A stretch of DNA of 63,496 nt, filler included, from Octopus bimaculoides (taxonomy: Eukaryota): the NCBI RefSeq assembly GCF_001194135.2. It is 6 parts of 5 records of this genome, joined end to end, with 100 filler letters (N's around TTAATTAATTAA, not from the genome) between each part and the next. Parts side by side here need not be neighbours in the genome. Positions count along the whole stretch, not along the records: positions 5,159 to 15,840 come from NC_068986.1; 5 more parts are not named here. One strand, written 5' to 3'. Every line of letters begins with the position of its first letter. Position 1 is the first letter of the stretch. The notes under the pieces are model-generated. The model worked only from the letters and a program-made list of their open reading frames with translations, did not search any database and was not told where the DNA came from. This document shows positions 5,115 through 15,840 of this stretch, piece after piece. Made by a program: the position numbers and the translations under genes.

Positions 5115-6045
5115 NNNNNNNNNNNNNNNNNNNNNNNNNNNNNNNNNNNNNNNNNNNNTGTGTGTGTGTGTGTGTGTGTCCTCTTCATGTATAATATCTA
5201 TAATAATTGATTCATTTGTGTGCATGTATGGACATTTGTGTATGTACATTTAAATGTACATATATGTATTTATGTATTTATGTTTATTTATGTATATCTA
5301 TGTATATGTTAAATTATGCATATATATGTGGGTTTTTACGGTTTTTATATTTTTTATATTTGTATATTTGTAATTTGACCTTATGAACTTTATAAGACAT
5401 TATCCCATTCTCTGTCACTATATGTAATTTTTTAAATTAATGATATGACATAATATGTCACAGGTGTTTGTATATTATTAATATTGTCCTTTTAGTAAAC
5501 AAATAGACAAGTAAATTGACACAATACAATGTCTGCAAGTTGATGAATACCACCTATTCCCCTCCATTTTCAATTGGTATATATATATATATATATATAT
5601 ATATNNNNNNNNNNNNNNNNNNNNNNNNNNNNNNNNNNNNNNNNNNNNNNNNNNNNNNNNNNNNNNNNNNNNNNNNNNNNNNNNNNNNNNNNNNNNNNNN
5701 NNNNNNNNNNNNNNNNNNNNNNNNNNNNNNNNNNNNNNNNNNNNNNNNNNNNNNNNNNNNNNNNNNNNNNNNNNNNNNNNNNNNNNNNNNNNNNNNNNNN
5801 NNNNNNNNNNNNNNNNNNNNNNNNNNNNNNNNNNNNNNNNNNNNNNNNNNNNNNNNNNNNNNNNNNNNNNNNNNNNNNNNNNNNNNNNNNNNNNNNNNNN
5901 NNNNNNNNNNNNNNNNNNNNNNNNNNNNNNNNNNNNNNNNNNNNNNNNNNNNNNNNNNNNNNNNNNNNNNNNNNNNNNNNNNNNNNNNNNNNNNNNNNNN
6001 NNNNNNNNNNNNNNNNNNNNNNNNNNNNNNNNNNNNNNNNNNNNN

Positions 6046-6620
6046 CATATCGTCTATGTGTCTGTATGCGTAGCAGTGGGTCGCCTAACACTTGGAGGCG
6101 ATGAAATAGAAGTGACTATGAATTTAGACACGGAGAGTAGAATCGCATGACGGGTAAGAACTTGGTGACAATCATTCAACTCGGTTAAGGATGTGCTAGA
6201 CAGGGCAACTTGCGCCAACCTTTTCAAAAGCACATTCTTGCCTTCAATGTTATACGCATGTGAGTCTTGCTCCTTGACGAAGAGAAGACAACATCTGCTT
6301 ACAGCGTAGAGAGCTATGGAAAAGTATATATTTGGCTTCTCGCTAAGAGGTCACATTTGGTACTAGGAGATCGGGGACAGAACTTCAGTGAAGTAAGTTG
6401 TTGCAAAATATCACCGCACAAAGCTACGATGGTGGACGCGTACAACTGTCGAGTGATACCCGCACGATAGGAAGCCTCCAATCGGAAGACGTCCAAACAG
6501 GTGAGAAGATGATGAAAAAAAGATGTTTGGTACAACGTGGAGGAGAATGACGAGAGAACGAGGGGAATGGAGTGAATGCTGCGGCGAGGGAAGCCGACAC
6601 AGCATGAGAAATTCTGGCCT
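6046..6620 (+). mobile_element. RTE-clade LINE 3' fragment, decayed
   Basis: Degenerate frame FNSVKDVL...ANLFKSTFLPSMLYACES...RAMEK...RGHI...YPHDRKPPIGRRPNR matches the post-RT region of RTE elements. Confidence 0.75.
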
Positions 6621-6710
6621 ATAGAGTTGATCCAGGTGAAGCAAACATAATATATTTTATCTATTAATCCCAAACATGCGTAACCAACTGAGTCTTTGGA
6701 TATTATGCAA

Positions 6711-6918
6711 TTATCTCTTATTTGATCTAGCCCAAGGTCTTCTGCAAATTGTTGGCTTAAAGCATATGTCCCCCAAATCTTTCCCATGTCGTTCTAACCG
6801 TATATCCAAAGTACTAGTGCTATGCTGACGCTTATTGCAAAATTGCTGCTTGACCTGGAGATATTCCTTGTTTAAATTGCCTTAATCTAATTAAAGTAAA
6901 AAGAAATAGTTGGGCAAC
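6711..6918 (-). CDS. Possible terminal exon(s) of the Cys-rich secreted protein gene (alternative acceptors at 6918 or 6880)
   Basis: CAG acceptor at 6918 gives (C)CPTISFYFN*; AAG acceptor at 6880 gives (C)NLNKEYLQVKQQFCNKR...SNKR*. Both fit the phase-1 end of exon 7380-7502; neither is proven. Confidence 0.25.
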
Positions 6919-7379
6919 CTGATATTAAAGTAATAATATATTTTGGGGTTTATTTTCATCGTATAGTAATCCATTTTAAACCTAAATTTTAATTGAATGT
7001 TAAACATTTTCCATCATTGGACGATTTCCACCAGCAACTGTTTTGTATCAGTAGCTTTCGCCAATTTTGAACAGAACATATTAGTGCAGTATGAGTGTTC
7101 CTAAACCACCATCATTCCATCAGCGGCTTTGCACAGTTATAAATTCTGAAAAACAACTTTGTGGAAAGGTTTCTACATCTTTTCTCCTCATAGTCACTTT
7201 ATCGACTTACATCCATCATTAATTCTCTCTATATGTTAGAAAAGTTTACGAAACAAAATTAATATATTTTCACTAATAAATGTAGAAAATGTAAGTATTA
7301 ACACATAAAAAAATATTAATTAATTTATCTCATATGCAAAATGAGAAGAAGTATATATCAGTTACTATTTATTACTTAC

Positions 7380-7502
7380 AGGTTTTCATCATTTTCGTTA
7401 CTGTGTTGAAACATGTTACCACGTTGCAATCATCTAATGTATGTAAATGCTTATTCTTCTCGTCGCAAAAACAACTTGAATGATAGTAACATACTGGACA
7501 AC
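7380..7502 (-). CDS. Candidate exon, unrecognised 6-cysteine domain
   Basis: Acceptor aatttctttaacag, donor CCT|gtaagt, 123 nt, phase 1-1. Only one frame is open: (G)CPVCYYHSSCFCDEKNKHLHTLDDCNVVTCFNTVTKMMKT. Confidence 0.6.
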
Positions 7503-8278
7503 CTGTTAAAGAAATTCATTTATAACATTTAAAAAGACAGGTTAGTTTCCATTTTTACGACATGGCTCAGTGGTTTAGCATATGTGGTTTAGTATAAATT
7601 CTGCTTGATTTAAATTCCTTCAATTATGATATATGATTGCTAGGTCTTAGTAAGTTTCGTAATCGTATGAATGACGAAAGCGCTCATGTGCAGAGGCCAA
7701 TGCAGCAGTGAATATTGACCCCGAGTTGTCTGTTGCTAACCAAGAGATCGATAAGAAGCTGAAGCAACTTTGAGCATTAAGGGTGCCGGATGATTAGCGA
7801 ACGACATCTAGAAAATTTCCAGTCAAATATAGATGTAATTAGAATTTAGTAAACAAATATTTCCCTTTAAATTTTTCGACTACCTCAATATCATCCGAGT
7901 GAATTTTTATTTTATTTTCCTCTCAATTTCGCTTAGTATTTTCATTCATTTTCTTTAAATATTTCTCATTAGAACGTGTTATTTACACAAAAGAATGAAG
8001 GTTTAAGTTTTAATGAAGATTTATACTTCGTAATTTTGTTATACGACTTTAGATGATGGGGATCGATAAGTTAACAACTTTTGCTTGAAAGGTCCAATGA
8101 TATAGGACGTTTACCGACCTGTAACTAAGAGGAGTGAAAGTTTTCATGCATATCACAAGTTAATTTGCATGCTGCATGGAAAGAAGACATGGAGGCTTTT
8201 AATGGCAGGTATATCAGAATCTTATACACTCATCAATTTCAATGCAGTAGATGAAGACGTAAGAATATTCAGTCTTAC

Positions 8279-8348
8279 CATATGGAGCATTCGTAACACT
8301 GTTGAGAAGATTTAAAAGGAGGAATAAAGTCATCGGAAATGCATACAT
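8279..8348 (-). CDS. Candidate exon encoding a signal peptide
   Basis: Acceptor ttttaattgtttctttactaacag with branch-like ACTAAC, donor ATG|gtaaga, 70 nt: MYAFPMTLFLLLNLLNSVTNAPY(G), in frame with 7380-7502. Confidence 0.6.
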
Positions 8349-9489
8349 CTGTTAGTAAAGAAACAATTAAAATATCTCATTATATTCCGTATTTCTTTAA
8401 GATTGTTGCTACACTAATTCCTTTGAAAATTCGATCATTTAGGCAATATTAACATTTAGTAATCGACTCGATTATTACGAATAAAATAGAGAAGTATGTC
8501 ACAGTGGTCTACCCGGAATACCGGAGTATTATGTTGATGGTGAGGGAAGTTATAGCGATGTGCATGATATATAGAAGCACGTAAAATACTTTGTTTAGAA
8601 TCGCGTGTTCCAGAATAAAGAACAGAATGTCAACTTTGCTTAATAATTAATATTAAATCCTGTATAACCAATGACAATATTCCCAAAATTGAAATGGAAT
8701 CTTGGAGACATATTTGCGAAAGAGATTTGACATGAAACAGCGTGATGAATTTAAATCAACATGACCTGGAAGCCACATATTAGCCATTCCAAAGACACAA
8801 TAAAACTCTTAACTTTAATAAATCATTTATTATCTGTGTCAAAGTTTTCATCGCATTAATGGCGACCTGCACACTCACGCAATCCGATTGGTTCAAAAGT
8901 TAACAATTCACTGTAGACTACGTAATTTAAATAATACAATACCTTCGATTTTATATAACAAAATCAGTCTGGTACAAGCCATTGAAAAAGATAACTGAAT
9001 CCTTGATGCAAACAATAATGATAATCCTTTCTTGTAAACGTACAACTGAAGAAACTTAAGAAAAGGCGCAACTGGATCGTATCGATCCCAGCATTCAGAT
9101 GCTGCTTATTTTTCGACAATGTAATTTCTTCGAAATGTAATGAAATTTTAATGTTTCATTGAAAATAAGTGTAGCACAAGACAGCCGACCATATATACAA
9201 TAAATGAATTCATAAAATGCAACAAAACATAATGTAACTCTCCAGACAAGGAAGAAAATTACATTTCAAGAAAAAGAAATTAAAAACACAGATTACAGTA
9301 GAAAGTTAAAAATAGGAAGTGTCTAAAAGAAACATGAAAACGTATTACTTTGAAGCCTGGTATATATGCTTTCCATCCGTTTGACCGAACCACCATGTTG
9401 AGTGGTCCTGATGAAACCTACACCAGTTGCAAATGGTGGTGCCGCGGGTGCAAAGACTGACATAAGTACAAACGTACGCCTCCCCCACC

Positions 9490-9690
9490 GTTTATATATA
9501 TATAGGGAGAATTCACAAAAAAAAAACAAAAGACGAAGATAGGTGGTGTAGAAAACAAACAGATGTATTAGTATAACTTTCGAGAATTGAAAAAGTCTTT
9601 AACGTTTCGAGCCTTCGCTCTTCTACAGAAAGGAACACAGAAAGAAACAAGAAGAGAAAAAAATGTGTGTAGTGGTTAGCGATCTATATA
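9490..9690 (-). mobile_element. Penelope-type pseudo-LTR-like repeat fragment
   Basis: Same layout as 54330-54540 (purine-rich tracts around a hammerhead-like core), bounded by TA microsatellite. Confidence 0.5.
9597..9632 (-). ncRNA. Minimal hammerhead-ribozyme-like motif (A6U variant)
   Basis: CTTT-CTGTAGA-A-GAGC gaag GCTC-GAAA-CGT-T-AAAG: stems I and II pair, palindromic AACGTT stem III. Confidence 0.45.
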
Positions 9691-9699
9691 TACATAAAA

Positions 9700-9830
9700 T
9701 GGGTTCTCTTTATAGTTTCCGTCTACAAAAGTCATTTATAACGCATTGCTTGGCCCGTGGGTTTAGTCGAAGTTTCTTGCAATGGGACCGAGCCTGAAAC
9801 AAAATGATTCCAAATCAATGCCTGCGCCTA
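9700..9830 (-). mobile_element. Old SINE family A fragment
   Basis: AGTTTCCGTCTAC...CCTGCGCCTATG matches the reverse complement of the family A head and body. Confidence 0.7.
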
Positions 9831-10249
9831 TGTTCGTCATTGTGCTACACTAAATAATCATTGAAACATTAAATGGTTTACACATTTGGTGAACAGGATG
9901 AATTTAATATCCTTCATGGTATCACGGGGAAACTATGATATCCATATTTTCTGGAAGGATACCAAATTCATGAATCGTCAGAAAATTATTTTGCCTTACA
10001 TCAGAGGCTTGCTCGAAGTGTACTCATACTTACTTAACTTTTTCTCGCAGACACAAGAGTTATACTTTTATTCTTTTACATATTTTGATACATCGGATGT
10101 GTTTACGGAGGAAAATTCAAGAAAAGTATGGAAAGCTTCACGAATATGTGTAACATTCTTACGCAGAGGTCATGATAATTTTTTGTACAGCATTTGAATT
10201 TTAGCATAGGCACTGCCAATTTAAATACACAAATTAATTTTTAAAATGG

Positions 10250-10445
10250 CAAAGTGAAAGTCGTTAGGAGCCGAACAAAATGCTTGGCAACATTTCTCCC
10301 GTCAGTTCTAATTCCATCGCAGTCGTCTTCGCCTTTCGTCCTTTCGCAGTAAATAAAAGAAATACCAGTTTATCACTGGGTTACTGTAATCGACTCTCAA
10401 ATTTCTCAAAGGCTTATTAGTTTTGCACCTTCGTTGTGAAAACAG
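10250..10445 (+). mobile_element. Old SINE family C copy
   Basis: Degenerate GCCTTTCGTCCTTTCG...ACCAG...CACTGGG...AATCGACT body shared with the family C copies. Confidence 0.65.
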
Positions 10446-10766
10446 AAAACTGCCAATGTTCATCACGTTAGATAAATATCCTGAGCTTTGTCGTACTTTT
10501 GTATGGCACTTAAGGTCTTTTTAGCATCGGTTATGTAAAGTTGATCATATACTGGGCGAAAATTGTAAAATGTACATAGAAGAGAGCTAATATTATATGC
10601 TATTTTTTATTCATTTAATGCAATAACAATTGACATATGTCAATCTGAACGTTACATGGTTAACTTTATAAACAGCTACATTTACAATTACAAAAAATGT
10701 TACAATTGCAGTTACGCATATGAATATATTCAAACACATATATAAACATGTATAAAGATAAACTGA

Positions 10767-10820
<54 letters not shown>

Positions 10821-12454
10821 AACACGCGCATATACATATGTATACGTGTATATGCATATGGATTAATTCGAATGGAAAGTATATTCGCAGCAAACTAAAC
10901 CAGATGCGAGAAAGCAGGTCGTAGTTGTGTGACAAAAATTCTGGAATTTCATGAGATAAATTCAATTTGACTTTAACAGCATTTTCTGCTAGTAACTAAC
11001 TACATTGACTTTAGAAATGTCAATTAAATGTATAAAAAGAAAATATAATATCGACATAGTGATTCGAATCAGCATCAATCTGATAGAGGATTCCCAGTCA
11101 CACATATTTCGGAAAATTGCATGCACAGCTCTTTTCTCTCGCGTATCAGTTTTCCATAGCCACCAATTCCATTTCAGTACAAATAAATAAATAAATGAAT
11201 AAACACAAATCCCTGACGGGAAATGTTACAAAAGAAATTATATGAGTTGCGCATGATTCTAACAAAAGAAAAACTATTTTCAAAGACATGAATTTTCATT
11301 GTGAGGATTATTGTGGGTACAACCGAAATTACCCACCATTACGATAGAAACCAGGAACAAGAGACAAAGATTACATAATATGTTAAGTAGGAAGCCTACA
11401 TGATTTACTGGACCTGCTAGAAATATCAAACAAGTCTTCCTAATATCTTACGTTAATTCATAAATCATATGATAAGAGGGAAAGATTATGGCTGAGAAAA
11501 AAATAGATGTGTGGTCCACGAATAGAATATATTTTGATCATAGTCCGTTTTGTTAATCACTCATGTAAATTAAACAACAATAATAATTATTTGAAAAGCG
11601 TATTCCACCTATGACTTCGAGTGAAATTTCATGCAAAATAGATTCGATATTATTGATGTGATAAAATTGTAAAATAATTAAGAGATGTTTATATTCAAAA
11701 CGAAAGGTAATTAATGTTAGTACCACATGTCTAGGGATTAATTATAATAATTCATTGACATATTTCATGCACAAAATGAAAAGAATCAATTCTAAATCTG
11801 CTAGACATGTAACTTACCTCGAAATTCTAAATGAGAGCTGAAAATACTTTGACAAAATGAAATTAACTAGTGTTGAAAACTGTATCTGAGTTTGAGTTTT
11901 TTTAACATGCAGCCGCCGTATGTGGTATATGGAAACCGTAAACATACATTCTCTACATGAAATTCTGATTTATAGCTATAGTACAAATAGGTTTTAGGTT
12001 TGCAATGACACGTTCATTGTTTGTTTTACTATTAGCGTTTAGCACTAATTTATGACCGACATGTAACTCGAAAAATAACACAGGAAATGTAGAAAATTAG
12101 GACAAAAGAATTCAAAATCATTTGGTAATGGGAGCGAAGCCCCAATTTGGAAATTCCATCAGGAAACATATAATCTAATGTATTATTCGTTTAAGATAGT
12201 AGGGAGATATTTTACATAAATATTGGTTGTAATTCTATCAGGTGGAACATGGCGTTATGAATGAGGGATTCACTAAAGTACTCAAACGCCGAAAGAAACA
12301 TAATTTCACCTCCCCATTCAATAGCCACAAATGTAAGATTCATACATTATTTTGCTCACACGAATTTTCATTATTGAAATTAAAGAATAAAATTCTCTAC
12401 TGGTCTTTCTACATATATTTGGAGATGGAAAGGAATCTTGTGACAGTATGATTA

Positions 12455-13722
12455 ATATCGGTTTGGCAAGAAAGTAATTCCATTTTTCGCAAATAGTTTT
12501 ACGATTGTTTTGAATGACTTTTGGCAACGATATGATTTTTTTCCTTTTGACATTTGATAGCCGTTACTTTTAGCTTACTTTAGAAGCAAATTGCGCGTGA
12601 CTTTGTTTACAGCTGTTAGTTCAGTGTCAATTGTAACATGGAGTGCAAAAACGAACATTTTCGCCATACTTTGCTTTTTTATTTTCAGAAAGGCAACAAA
12701 GCTGCTGAGGCCCACAAAGAGATATGTGAAGTTTATGATGTTAGGCGCCTAACAGAATGCACATGTCAGAAATGGTTTTAAATATTCCGTTCTGGAGATT
12801 TTTCACTAAAAGATGACCAAGTTTCTGGTCGACTTACTAAAGTTGATGATGACCGAATCAAAACCATAATTGAATCTGATTGTCATATAACTGTGCGGGA
12901 GATAACATACAGGGCAAATGTATCACACACAACAACTGAAAATCACTTAAAATGTCTTGGACTTGTTAAGAAGTTCGATATTTGGGTTCAACATAAATTG
13001 AAAGAGATTCACATGACACACCGAATCAATATTTGCGATATGCATTTAAAACGCATTGAAATCGACCTCGTCTTGAAACGAATCATCACGAAAAATGCAT
13101 TCTCTATCATAACATCAATCCAAAACTGTCATGGTCCAAGCGTAATGAACCAGCAAAAACCACTTCGAAAGCGAAATTGCATAAAAAAAGGTCATGCTGT
13201 TAATTTGCAGGGATGAGAAAGGGGTTTTGCATTTTAGCTGCTTCCAAAGAACCAAATGATCAATTCAGATGTTTACTCTCAACAACGAATGAAACAGGAG
13301 GAAGCAATCAAATGAAAACAGCCAAAATTGGCAAATCGTAAAGGAATGACAATGCTAGACCACACACGTCTTTGCTAACTGATGAAAAATTACTGGAGCT
13401 TGGTTGGAAAATGATGTCACATCCACCAGATAGCTCTCATCTTGCTCCATCAGATTACCATTTATTTCGAAATTTGCAAAATTCTGTGGATGTTAAAACT
13501 TTCAATAATGATGATGATCTAAAATCGCACTTGCTTCAATTTTTGTCTGAATAAGAACCAGGAGTTCTATTAGAGCGGAACCACGAAGTTGCCAGAAAGA
13601 GATGGTAAAGGGTCATGGAACAAAATGGAGAAAATATAATTGATTAAAATTCATTCTTTGTATGAAAAAAATGAATTTCATTTCACACTATAAAACCAAT
13701 TTTATTTTCTTGCCAACTTAAT
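12455..13722 (+). mobile_element. Full-length decayed mariner transposon with both TIRs
   Basis: TIRs TTGGCAAGAAAGTAATT / TTTTCTTGCCAACTTAA with TA flanks; MECKNEHFRH...CQKWF...WVQHKL...HPPDSSHLAPSDYHLFRNLQNS with stops and frameshifts. Confidence 0.92.
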
Positions 13723-15799
13723 ATACCTTGGTGTGTATTTGCTTTTGTATATTCATTATCACACTATGGCAAAGAAATAAATGAGCGAATATATCATCCT
13801 AGCTTAACGCGTAAAGTTTTATTATCAGCATAAAAAGCATGTTGGATAAAGAACTTGTAATCGTTGAAACTGTATATATAAAACACAATAACTACTCCAT
13901 AAATTTCGAAAAAAGAAAATAGATAAGTGGCGACTGTCATATTAAAACGTTCAATGAAAAGGCTTTCACACTCTCATATTGTATAGCTTTCATTTTCGGT
14001 TTTCTTTTCTATGTTTTATTTTCTTTCAAACTTCTTCGTACTTGTTATGATGTTATATACTTCATTTTAATTTCCTGAATTGACAGTTTTCAGCTCGGTT
14101 TATTGGTGAATAAGTTCTCACTATGCTTGCTATTATTTATTTTTCTCTTCCTTTCATTTCTCATATCCTTTTCTTTCTTTAATAATGGAGTTATGCTTTA
14201 GAATACCAGAGTATAAGGTATTTCTTAACTTTTTCTAACATAACTATGACAAATATAATTTAATTATAATTATTCATTTGATTTGTTGGTTTTGTTTTTT
14301 GATTAACTGATTGGAAATTTGTGAAATTAGTTAACATATTTTAAAATTCAATTGCATACTCGACTATTCAAATTCTTGCTTCTGTTTTCGTTCTCTAAAC
14401 ATTTTTATTAAATGTTTCTTGTTTCATTTCTTGTTTCATTTTCTGGGTCGACAAATTTAAAATTAAGTTTATATGTTTGTGTTTGTATGCATCATTGGAA
14501 ACCTCTATTCTCAAAATCTACAACAACGACAACCCTTCAAATGCCCCCATCCCACCCCTTCCATTTATCTACCAATACTCTTCTATACTTCTCTCAATAA
14601 CTTGATCATTCACCCTTCCATTTTCCTGTACTGACTCTGTTATCTCTTCATCCTCGTCCTTGCTTCCTCACTCCTCTCACCCCAATCGAACCACTACATC
14701 ATCTTTCCACTAGTACTTGCCTTCCTCTTCATCCACGATACCAATACATTTTCCAGTCTCTCGACCTGAAATGTTAGATTTTTGTCTCTCCACCTTGAAG
14801 ACCAGAATGTGGAGGCCGGATCTAATCCATGTCTATTTGCTTCTATCAATGGTTGCATATTTCTGCAAACATGATGAAGTAAATCCGAGCCTCCGGAAAC
14901 AGCTATCGCACTTATAACACCGTACTTGTCCATCTTTAATTTTTCTGTGACTTGTAATCTGTGTTTGTTTGCACTGTTAATATATAAATATCTATATATT
15001 TATATTTGAATATTCATGGTCTGAAAATGTTCATGCTTTGCTTTCTCTTTATTTACATACATATATATTTTCTATATACAAGTAGTTTTATTTTTATGTG
15101 CGTCATTNNNNNNNNNNNNNNNNNNNNNNNNNNNNNNNNNNNNNNNNNNNNNNNNNNNNNNNNNNNNNNNNNNNNNNNNNNNNNNNNNNNNNNNNNTAAT
15201 TGTTAGAGAGGACAACCAACGCTAAAGCAAGGCAAACGTCTCAAATCGTATAAAATATTATTATTGGAAAAACTTCAAAGTCTTACATCCGTTTCTGGGA
15301 TATCCCCGAGTAATGAGATATTGAGTCATCAGAGACAAATTGGGGAAAATAGGGAAAATGAGAGTGGTATATTTTCATGAAATGACGACATAGAGGAGGA
15401 GAATAAAGGAATAAAGAGGTGAAGACAGAGAAGAAAGAAGAAACATAAAAGTTCATAGTTTAAATTTCCGATGTTTTAGAAACACGAGCACACATCCTTG
15501 GGTACAATCCTGCGTAGATACATATGGGTTAAAATCCAGAGATAAAAAGACGCGAACATATCGACATTCAATAACAGAATGGTAGCGGAGGTGGCTATAA
15601 AGTGGTAAAAGAAAAAACAGTAAATAGAGAAGTAGATGGAGTGAGGGGGTAGAATTTAAGGATTAGCTTTAGGATTAGATCAAGTGTATAGGCGCATGGT
15701 GTCTAAGAATATTGTGTACGGGGTAGCGTACACAATATTTACCTAGCGTACCTAATCGTTTAGAACACCTGTGAACTAAACCGCCATATTTTGTATATA

Positions 15800-15840
<41 letters not shown>

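Follow-up and report, generated by a model that had tools for sequence, protein, structure and literature searches.

Restriction to particular taxa, tandem expansion and fast-changing mature exons on a fixed cysteine scaffold are typical of venom peptides, of gamete-recognition and pheromone proteins, and of immune effectors. In the conotoxin superfamilies of Conus, a conserved signal precedes a hypervariable mature region with a fixed Cys framework, and exons outpace introns. Loligo beta-microseminoprotein and the attractin-type pheromones of Aplysia are small secreted disulfide-rich reproductive signals. The octopus gene family described here resembles the latter two in that its products are predicted to be small, secreted and disulfide-rich, and it shares with the conotoxins a conserved leader exon, invariant Cys, a dN/dS near 1, a mature exon at least as diverged as the intron, and tandem expansion. 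Unlike conotoxins, however, the family has neither a sequence or framework match to them nor a Pfam match, its mature part of ~107 aa and 12 Cys is spread over three exons with no propeptide region, and its likeness to venom-gland products is one of pattern. By size, the predicted mature product (~12 kDa) can be likened to the egg sperm-attractant of O. vulgaris (~11 kDa; De Lisa et al. 2013, as cited in PMC6712556). A literature search gave no paper naming the accessions, the LOC numbers or the conserved peptide strings of the family, and these strings likewise returned no match that would link it to the sperm-attractant.

The window analyzed here is a stretch of 63,496 nucleotides (filler included) of Octopus bimaculoides DNA, and the gene copy under study (hereafter the window copy) lies on the minus strand of the piece starting at 5159. 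To judge from homology and gene structure, it very probably comprises coding exons 1 and 2, out of four, of an unannotated paralogue in an Octopus-restricted, tandemly arrayed family. What is new is this unannotated member; the family itself is already annotated but wholly uncharacterised. The relatives used for comparison are LOC128248166, LOC128248167 and LOC128248058 of O. bimaculoides (bim166, bim167 and bim058; XP_052824992-5, XP_052824996-7 and XP_052824409, respectively, all named 'uncharacterized protein') and copies A and B of a tandem cluster in O. vulgaris (vulA and vulB; OX597819.1, locus L001). Gene models for the relatives were rebuilt from the locus DNA, and their translations equal the proteins exactly. 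The full-length family set consists of the five members with such rebuilt models, and comparisons of exons 1 and 2 cover seven copies from the two species. The exon pair of the window copy is composed of the following features (a slash marks a splice junction).

8279 to 8348, minus strand: coding exon 1, 70 nt, with the start codon, the hydrophobic leader MYAFPMTLFLLLNLLNSVTNAPYG and the phase-1 donor G/GTAAGA.
7503 to 8278, minus strand: intron 1, 776 nt, alignable over its full length with vulA, vulB and bim166.
7380 to 7502, minus strand: coding exon 2, 123 nt, with the first module of six Cys, GCPVCYYHSSCFCDEKNKHLHTLDDCNVVTCFNTVTKMMKT, and phase 1 at its end.
7374 to 7379, minus strand: donor after exon 2, GTAAGT; read-through would add CK and then TAA.

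The earlier note, made from the raw sequence, had proposed two minus-strand exons with consensus splice sites around a 776-nt intron, and its coordinates were reproduced exactly. The in-frame join also holds: spliced exons 1 and 2 translate to MYAFPMTLFLLLNLLNSVTNAPYGCPVCYYHSSCFCDEKNKHLHTLDDCNVVTCFNTVTKMMKT, 64 residues with phase 1 at the end, the claimed spacing C-x2-C-x5-C-x-C-x12-C-x4-C can be read from this translation, and both other frames of exon 2, described as closed, contain stops. On the minus strand, exon 1 reads ATG...CCATATG/GTAAGA and exon 2 is delimited as TTTAACAG/GTTGTCC...AAAACCT/GTAAGT. Immediately 5′ of the ATG lies TTCTTTACTAACAG, a branch point and acceptor of which the earlier note made no use, as it made none of the CK-TAA read-through. 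The length, phase and donor of exon 1 are the same in the window copy, bim166, bim167 and vulB according to gene models, tblastn and alignments, and window positions 8362-8279 fit the ATG exon of the family in sequence, length (70 nt) and phase. Exon 2 runs from phase 1 to phase 1, has the length of its counterpart in vulB, being one codon shorter than the 126-nt form (123 vs 126 nt), and aligns at all six Cys with six other copies. Intron 1 holds an old tRNA-like (SINE-like) insert on the plus strand at ~7558-7800. The secreted-type reading of the two exons finds support in homology, which makes exon 1 the hydrophobic leader exon and exon 2 the Cys-rich exon of a secreted-type family. The proposed signal-peptide cleavage after ...TNA fares less well, as a Pro at +1 is unfavourable and a cut one or two residues earlier appears equally likely.

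The 64-aa peptide was run by HMMER against 1.84 billion representative proteins in a full scan, which gave two genuine matches along with four tandem-repeat artefacts. The first is P0002 (148 aa, E = 3.5e-12, 52% identity, query 1-62 aligned with protein 1-63), which is XP_052824993, isoform X2 of LOC128248166 of Octopus bimaculoides; the match runs through both exons, and the splice join and all six Cys coincide. The second is P0005, a hypothetical protein of 313 aa from O. vulgaris, matched over exon 2 only (E = 5e-9, 57% identity). Profile searches add LOC128248167 (131 aa), LOC128248058 (163 aa) and P0012 of O. vulgaris (126 aa), and those of the protein collections returned no family member outside Octopus. 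Over the leader and first Cys module, the window copy is 47-51% identical to bim166 and bim167 and 34% identical to bim058. It has the same splice signals and phases as its annotated relatives, the conserved promoter and 5′ exon, and the tandem-cluster setting; unlike them, it is unannotated, has only exons 0-2 visible, and carries mariner and LINE-like insertions. A tBLASTn check of Cys conservation had been suggested, and all six Cys proved invariant in seven copies from two Octopus species. That the copy is unannotated was borne out as well, its sequence being in no protein of the searched collections.

The domain itself, which the earlier note did not recognise, has no known match. Pfam returned zero families for the peptide and for its full-length relatives at E up to 10, and a PDB sequence profile search with the family returned zero matches at the same limit. 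The structure prediction called for in the earlier note gives no structural support: AlphaFold on a four-sequence alignment reached a pLDDT of 38.6, which is unusable. Several candidate assignments were rejected. The hallmark of an LRRNT cap (Pfam PF01462) is C-P-x2/3-C-x-C-x(6-20)-C followed by leucine-rich repeats; the peptide has no such Pfam match at E up to 10, and its relatives continue with Cys modules, not LRRs. A C2H2 zinc finger has the form C-x2-4-C-x12-H-x3-5-H with an F/L core, and a decayed version was considered for the spacing C-x2-C-x13-H-x-H, which has no Pfam match and whose His are not conserved in the relatives. Known toxin and Cys-knot domains (conotoxin superfamilies, EGF, Kazal, Kunitz, WAP, TIL, ShK and others) gave zero matches both in Pfam and in the PDB profile search.

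All five full-length members are composed of four coding exons with identical phases (70 or 67, 126 or 123, 132, 129 or 120, and 68 nt), with donors of GTAAG or GTATGT and TTCTTTACTAACAG directly preceding the ATG. The ATG exon of the family (67-70 nt) encodes a leader of the type MY.(F/L).V.LF..L.LP... and ends at a phase-1 GTAAG donor, and exon 2 (123-126 nt) encodes C-x2-C-x5-C-x-C-x12/13-C-x4-C; the window copy conforms to both. Exon 3 (120-132 nt) contributes four Cys in the pattern C.DT.G.C...FG...C...YC, and exon 4 (68 nt), found 4-12 kb 3′ of exon 2 in the relatives, contributes two Cys and the C-terminal ...EC before the stop. The resulting 12 Cys (6 + 4 + 2 over exons 2-4) are invariant across the five full-length copies. 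Intron 1 is 588-773 nt long in the relatives (2384 nt in the case with a TE insertion), and the 776 nt of the window copy fit; intron 2 of the family spans 1.2 to 9.7 kb. The 64-residue peptide is not complete, because all full-length relatives use the exon-2 donor and add two coding exons with 4 + 2 Cys, giving a precursor of ~130 aa. Of the earlier alternatives, a peptide in its own right or the N-terminal part of a larger protein, the latter is thus nearer the mark, even if the complete protein remains small. Further upstream, the window copy retains the 5′ part of the family gene.

11968 to 11975, minus strand: TATA box CTATAAAT, aligned in the window copy, bim166, bim167, bim058, vulB and vul012.
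11818 to 11940, minus strand: non-coding 5′ exon ('exon 0'), 3′ end exactly TTTCGAG/GTAAGT, donor GT at 11817-11816.
8349 to 11817, minus strand: intron 0, 3469 nt, from the conserved donor to the acceptor TTCTTTACTAACAG.

Exon 0 and the TATA box lie ~3.5 kb upstream of the ATG exon of the window copy, the 5′ end of exon 0 (TSS) being an estimate from the TATA box only. The family has a TATA box ~100 nt upstream, and exon, donor and TATA are kept across all members. Exon 0 is homologous to the first exon of isoforms X1 and X3 of LOC128248166, which Gnomon splices onto the ATG exon. The promoter and exon 0 block is 84-86% identical between paralogues vs a background of ~74%; window positions 11975-11818 align at 84-86% with bim166, bim167 and vulB, with the donor kept. 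Exon 0 of the window copy contains no in-frame ATG, so translation would start in exon 1. Intron 0 harbours a (TA)n microsatellite as well as a decayed copy resembling U6.

Over its whole length, the piece is collinear with vulA at 84-88%; it aligns at 80-85% with the adjacent vulB and is only paralogous (70-76%) to the O. bimaculoides loci of LOC128248166, LOC128248167 and LOC128248058 (L002-L004). At matched family loci of O. bimaculoides and O. vulgaris elsewhere, non-coding identity is 81-88%, and the gaps in the piece are like those of the O. bimaculoides assembly, both of which make that species its probable source. The window copy and vulA have a mariner insertion in common, as well as the 3′ end of a LINE-like one, and for this reason we regard the window copy as the orthologue-like counterpart of vulA. 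The mariner is missing from vulB, and collinearity between vulB and the window stops at 6980, before the LINE-like insertion. Among the open segments of the piece (40 aa or longer, either strand), Pfam matched only Mos1 HTH_48, from the mariner, and gave nothing on the minus strand. In O. vulgaris, vulB has all four coding exons and is covered in part by the chimeric model CAI9724927.1, whereas vulA has neither the promoter block nor exons 3-4 and carries an AAG acceptor where the window copy keeps the promoter and CAG. In O. bimaculoides, LOC128248167 and LOC128248166 lie on the same strand 12 kb apart, and orphan exon-4 matches upstream of LOC128248167 and of LOC128248058 represent further unannotated copies.

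Downstream of exon 2 lie two further features.

6046 to 6690, plus strand: 3′ fragment of a LINE-like retrotransposon, inside intron 2, ~700 nt downstream of exon 2.
5605 to 6045, no strand: assembly gap of 441 N, on the expected path to exon 3.

No homologue of exon 3 or exon 4 was found in 5159-7379 by tblastn or family HMMs; the LINE-like insertion, the gap and the end of the piece intervene. The plus-strand frames of the LINE-like fragment read ...FLPSMLYACESCSLTK... plus further tail motifs, a motif-level assignment with no Pfam match. Its last ~200 nt are common to vulA, and 6046-6478 has no counterpart there. Past the gap, the sequence is microsatellite up to the piece end. Exon 3 could lie beyond this end, because intron 2 spans up to 9.7 kb in the family, and we consider that exons 3-4 of the window copy are either beyond the piece or lost. 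A phase-compatible acceptor scan gave its best exon-3 candidate at 6880, which was rejected for a stop in vulA. In vulA, a 46-nt match had pointed to an exon-3 remnant, of which the alignment shows none, and neither exon 3 nor exon 4 was found by tblastn, HMM scans or alignment before vulB begins. By its sequence, vulA is decayed, because exons 3-4 and the promoter/5′-exon block are missing and its acceptor reads AAG; the lineage of the window copy may then be decaying too, vulA being its closest relative. The window copy, for its part, is intact in all visible parts, that is, promoter, exon 0, exon 1, exon 2 and splice signals.

We also compared the divergence of exon 2 with that of intron 1. 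Between the window copy and bim166, identity is 80.7% in intron 1 and 65.9% in exon 2 (42/123 positions diverged in the exon vs 134/689 in the intron, Fisher P = 5e-4), and between vulA and vulB it is 90.2% and 75.6%, respectively (Fisher P = 3e-5, four-way alignment). When the seven copies were aligned independently pair by pair, divergence in exon 2 exceeded that in intron 1 for 16 of 21 pairs, ~10 of them significantly, an excess that may be inflated by gene conversion, intron constraint or alignment bias; the vulB pairs are unreliable in this comparison because of a 1.6-kb TE in the vulB intron. Values of dN/dS range over 0.5-1.0 for exons 1-2 and over 0.6-1.3 for full coding sequences, yet even with dN as high as 0.5 the 12 Cys stay invariant in the five full-length copies. 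All copies keep the frame and all Cys, all exon indels are multiples of three, and the four-way DNA alignment retains the ORF, the six Cys and the splice sites in 4/4 copies. Under neutral substitution, the probability of retaining the ORF, six Cys and the ATG is 1e-4 for the window copy vs bim166 and 0.018 for the window copy vs vulA. Taken alone, the latter pair is compatible with neutrality, with a mature-part omega of 1.0 and similar exon and intron divergence, as in a pseudogene. Overall, the pattern is that of a scaffold under apparent purifying selection whose loops would be free, or driven, to change.

An exon pair of this kind could in principle be an accident of AT-rich non-coding DNA, in which a chance ATG, a hydrophobic run, GT/AG pairs and a Cys-rich open frame happen to coincide. 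With thresholds set after the observed model (an ATG exon resembling a signal peptide, GTRAG donor, YAG acceptor with a pyrimidine-rich tract, 35 or more open codons and 6 or more Cys within 45 residues), an equivalent model occurs in 0.5-1.2% (~1%) of Markov-simulated 9-kb pieces, and the real 9-kb piece has one passing model, the exon pair found. The combination of signal peptide and Cys, which had been offered as independent support, is therefore suggestive by simulation but insufficient alone, because a rate of ~1% implies thousands of such accidents in a Gb-scale genome of ~32% GC; it is homology that decides. A first word-indexed protein search with the 64-aa peptide had been empty, which together with the lack of a Pfam match would fit an accident; this result was, however, later shown to be a false negative and reflects a tool limitation rather than evidence, because the peptide and P0005 have five or more exact 5-mers in common. 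Against coincidence, the exons, their join, the splice sites and the six Cys recur in six further copies from two species, three of which are annotated multi-exon genes, and the chance that the pair is accidental appears negligible. It is also very improbable that the copies are alike merely as a segmental duplication or repeat unit, with 'exons' that resemble each other through a young shared block and not through coding. Introns and flanks do align too (74-88%), and exons are no better conserved than introns, as such a block would have it. But the ORF and all Cys survive 34% divergence of exon 2 at the neutral probability of 1e-4 given above, and the constancy of the 12 Cys, the indels in multiples of three, the conserved splice signals and the several isoforms among the Gnomon models all speak for coding exons.

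If the window copy is a family member, it may still be broken or differently built. One proposal is a complete gene of two coding exons in which the exon-2 donor goes unused: read-through yields CK and TAA TAA overlapping an AATAAA at 7368-7373, which would end the transcript after ...KTCK and leave a 66-aa precursor with 7 Cys, and no exon 3 was found nearby. The added CK-TAA is, however, nothing other than the translated donor T/GTAAGTAA, kept in 4/4 aligned copies and spliced in every full-length model; an odd number of Cys is unfavourable in a secreted protein; and AATAAA is common in DNA of 32% GC and not conserved in vulA. We judge this gene structure improbable. A much more serious possibility, which we would place somewhat short of an even chance, is that the window copy is a non-functional relic, a 3′-truncated or decaying duplicate whose exons are as yet undamaged or have been patched by gene conversion. 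The state of its orthologue-like counterpart vulA, with exons 1-2 only, no promoter block and an AAG acceptor, points this way, as do the dN/dS of 1.0 in the mature part between the two copies, with 13% divergence in exon 2 vs 11.7% in the intron, the absence of exons 3 and 4 from the piece, the LINE-like insertion in intron 2, and the absence of the copy's protein from the searched collections. On the other side, the window copy, unlike vulA, retains the TATA box, the 5′ exon with its donor, the CAG acceptor, the ATG, six Cys and both donors; the ORF, Cys and ATG have been retained over the divergence from vulA at P ~0.02 under neutrality; 3/6 Cys codons differ between the two, all synonymously; and exons 3-4 may sit further along, past the LINE fragment, gap and piece end, given an intron 2 of 1.2 to 9.7 kb. 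Weighing the two sides, we put a working gene and a relic at roughly even odds from the sequence at hand.

For a functional family member, we propose that transcription would start at the conserved TATA promoter and that the short non-coding exon would be spliced to the acceptor directly before the ATG. The hydrophobic leader of exon 1 would send the product into the secretory pathway, and exons 2-4 would encode a mature protein of ~107 residues with 12 invariant Cys, presumably six disulfides, and an ...EC end. This ~12 kDa protein may act extracellularly, as a ligand or effector, on a partner that itself changes fast, such as prey, a pathogen or a mate. Such a model would explain why the mature exons evolve at least at the pace of the intron although their scaffold stays fixed. 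The sequence pattern suggests a secreted effector or ligand that is diversifying. The more specific view, in which the family is lineage-restricted and tandemly expanding in a conotoxin-like evolutionary mode, with a role in venom or saliva, in mate or gamete recognition or in immunity, and in which the window copy is still functional, is put forward tentatively and with more doubt than belief.

Here, a genuine gene copy missing from the annotation was found, its splice boundaries exact, by reading raw sequence without tools. An octopus-only family known as 'uncharacterized' can now be described with a four-exon architecture, a 12-Cys scaffold, a promoter, clusters in two species and fast coding evolution. 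It may serve as a candidate list for cephalopod chemical ecology, because such signatures usually yield toxins, pheromones, gamete-recognition proteins or immune effectors.

A close examination of the family loci also revealed several annotation faults, including a chimeric 98-kb gene model in O. vulgaris, out-of-frame isoforms of LOC128248166 and several missed copies, among them those upstream of LOC128248167 and LOC128248058 and copy C of O. vulgaris.

A word-indexed protein search with the 64-residue peptide spliced from exons 1 and 2 of the window copy reported no candidate sharing three 5-residue words. The O. vulgaris hypothetical protein CAI9724927.1 (P0005) lies within the searched collection and has GCPVC, CPVCY, PVCYY, VCYYH and NTVTK in common with this query, yet went unreported, and word-index negatives for short queries are therefore unreliable.

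The deposited 98-kb model of CAI9724927.1 (10001-108631 of L001, the O. vulgaris tandem-cluster locus) is a chimera in which a retrotransposon-like ORF has been linked to exons 1, 2 and 4 of copy B, with exon 3 skipped and exon 1 translated in the wrong frame (..VVPPSKSSQKCYESS..). In O. bimaculoides, isoforms X1 and X2 of LOC128248166 (L002, 14627-14758 and 19951-20098) use an earlier exon 3 donor, which places exon 4 out of frame (FASWNVRIKM...); among the isoforms of this gene, only the X3 frame (..ICKLERENKNEKYLIYENRLEC) is kept in other family members. Other family exons also lack an annotated protein: orphan copies of exon 4 are found upstream of LOC128248167 and LOC128248058 (L004, 311-394; L003, 1418-1504), and a divergent O. 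vulgaris copy C, which comprises exon 2-like and exon 3-like sequences, lies on the opposite strand of L001 (30194-34593, minus strand).

Within intron 1 of the window copy, a tRNA-like box A (GGCTCAGTGGTTTAGC) stands at the head of a GC-richer stretch of ~240 nt (~7558-7800, plus strand), in which ARAGORN called no tRNA. This stretch probably represents an ancient tRNA-derived SINE; all four aligned copies have it, so the insert predates the duplications.

Intron 0 holds a full-length U6 snRNA-like sequence (10122-10228, minus strand, 58 bits), in which the ACAGAGA box and the AGC triad are both mutated, so that it is a pseudogene or retro-copy. A second match lies between exons 0 and 1 of O. 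vulgaris P0012:

L005 8724-8831, plus strand: U6-like match, 45.8 bits

Simple repeats are also present in this piece of the window:

10730-10870, 5159-5604 and 15700-15840: (TA)n and (CA)n microsatellites

Sub-threshold Rfam matches to 'mir-297 / mir-1277' and palindromic repeat calls at these microsatellites were rejected as low-complexity artefacts.

A decayed mariner/Mos1-type transposon (12458-13720, plus strand) with frameshifted ORF pieces and an HTH_48 domain (12620-12778; Pfam, E 2.2e-13) precedes the family promoter of the window copy by ~500 nt. Copy B is without this insertion, which is common to the window and O. vulgaris copy A.
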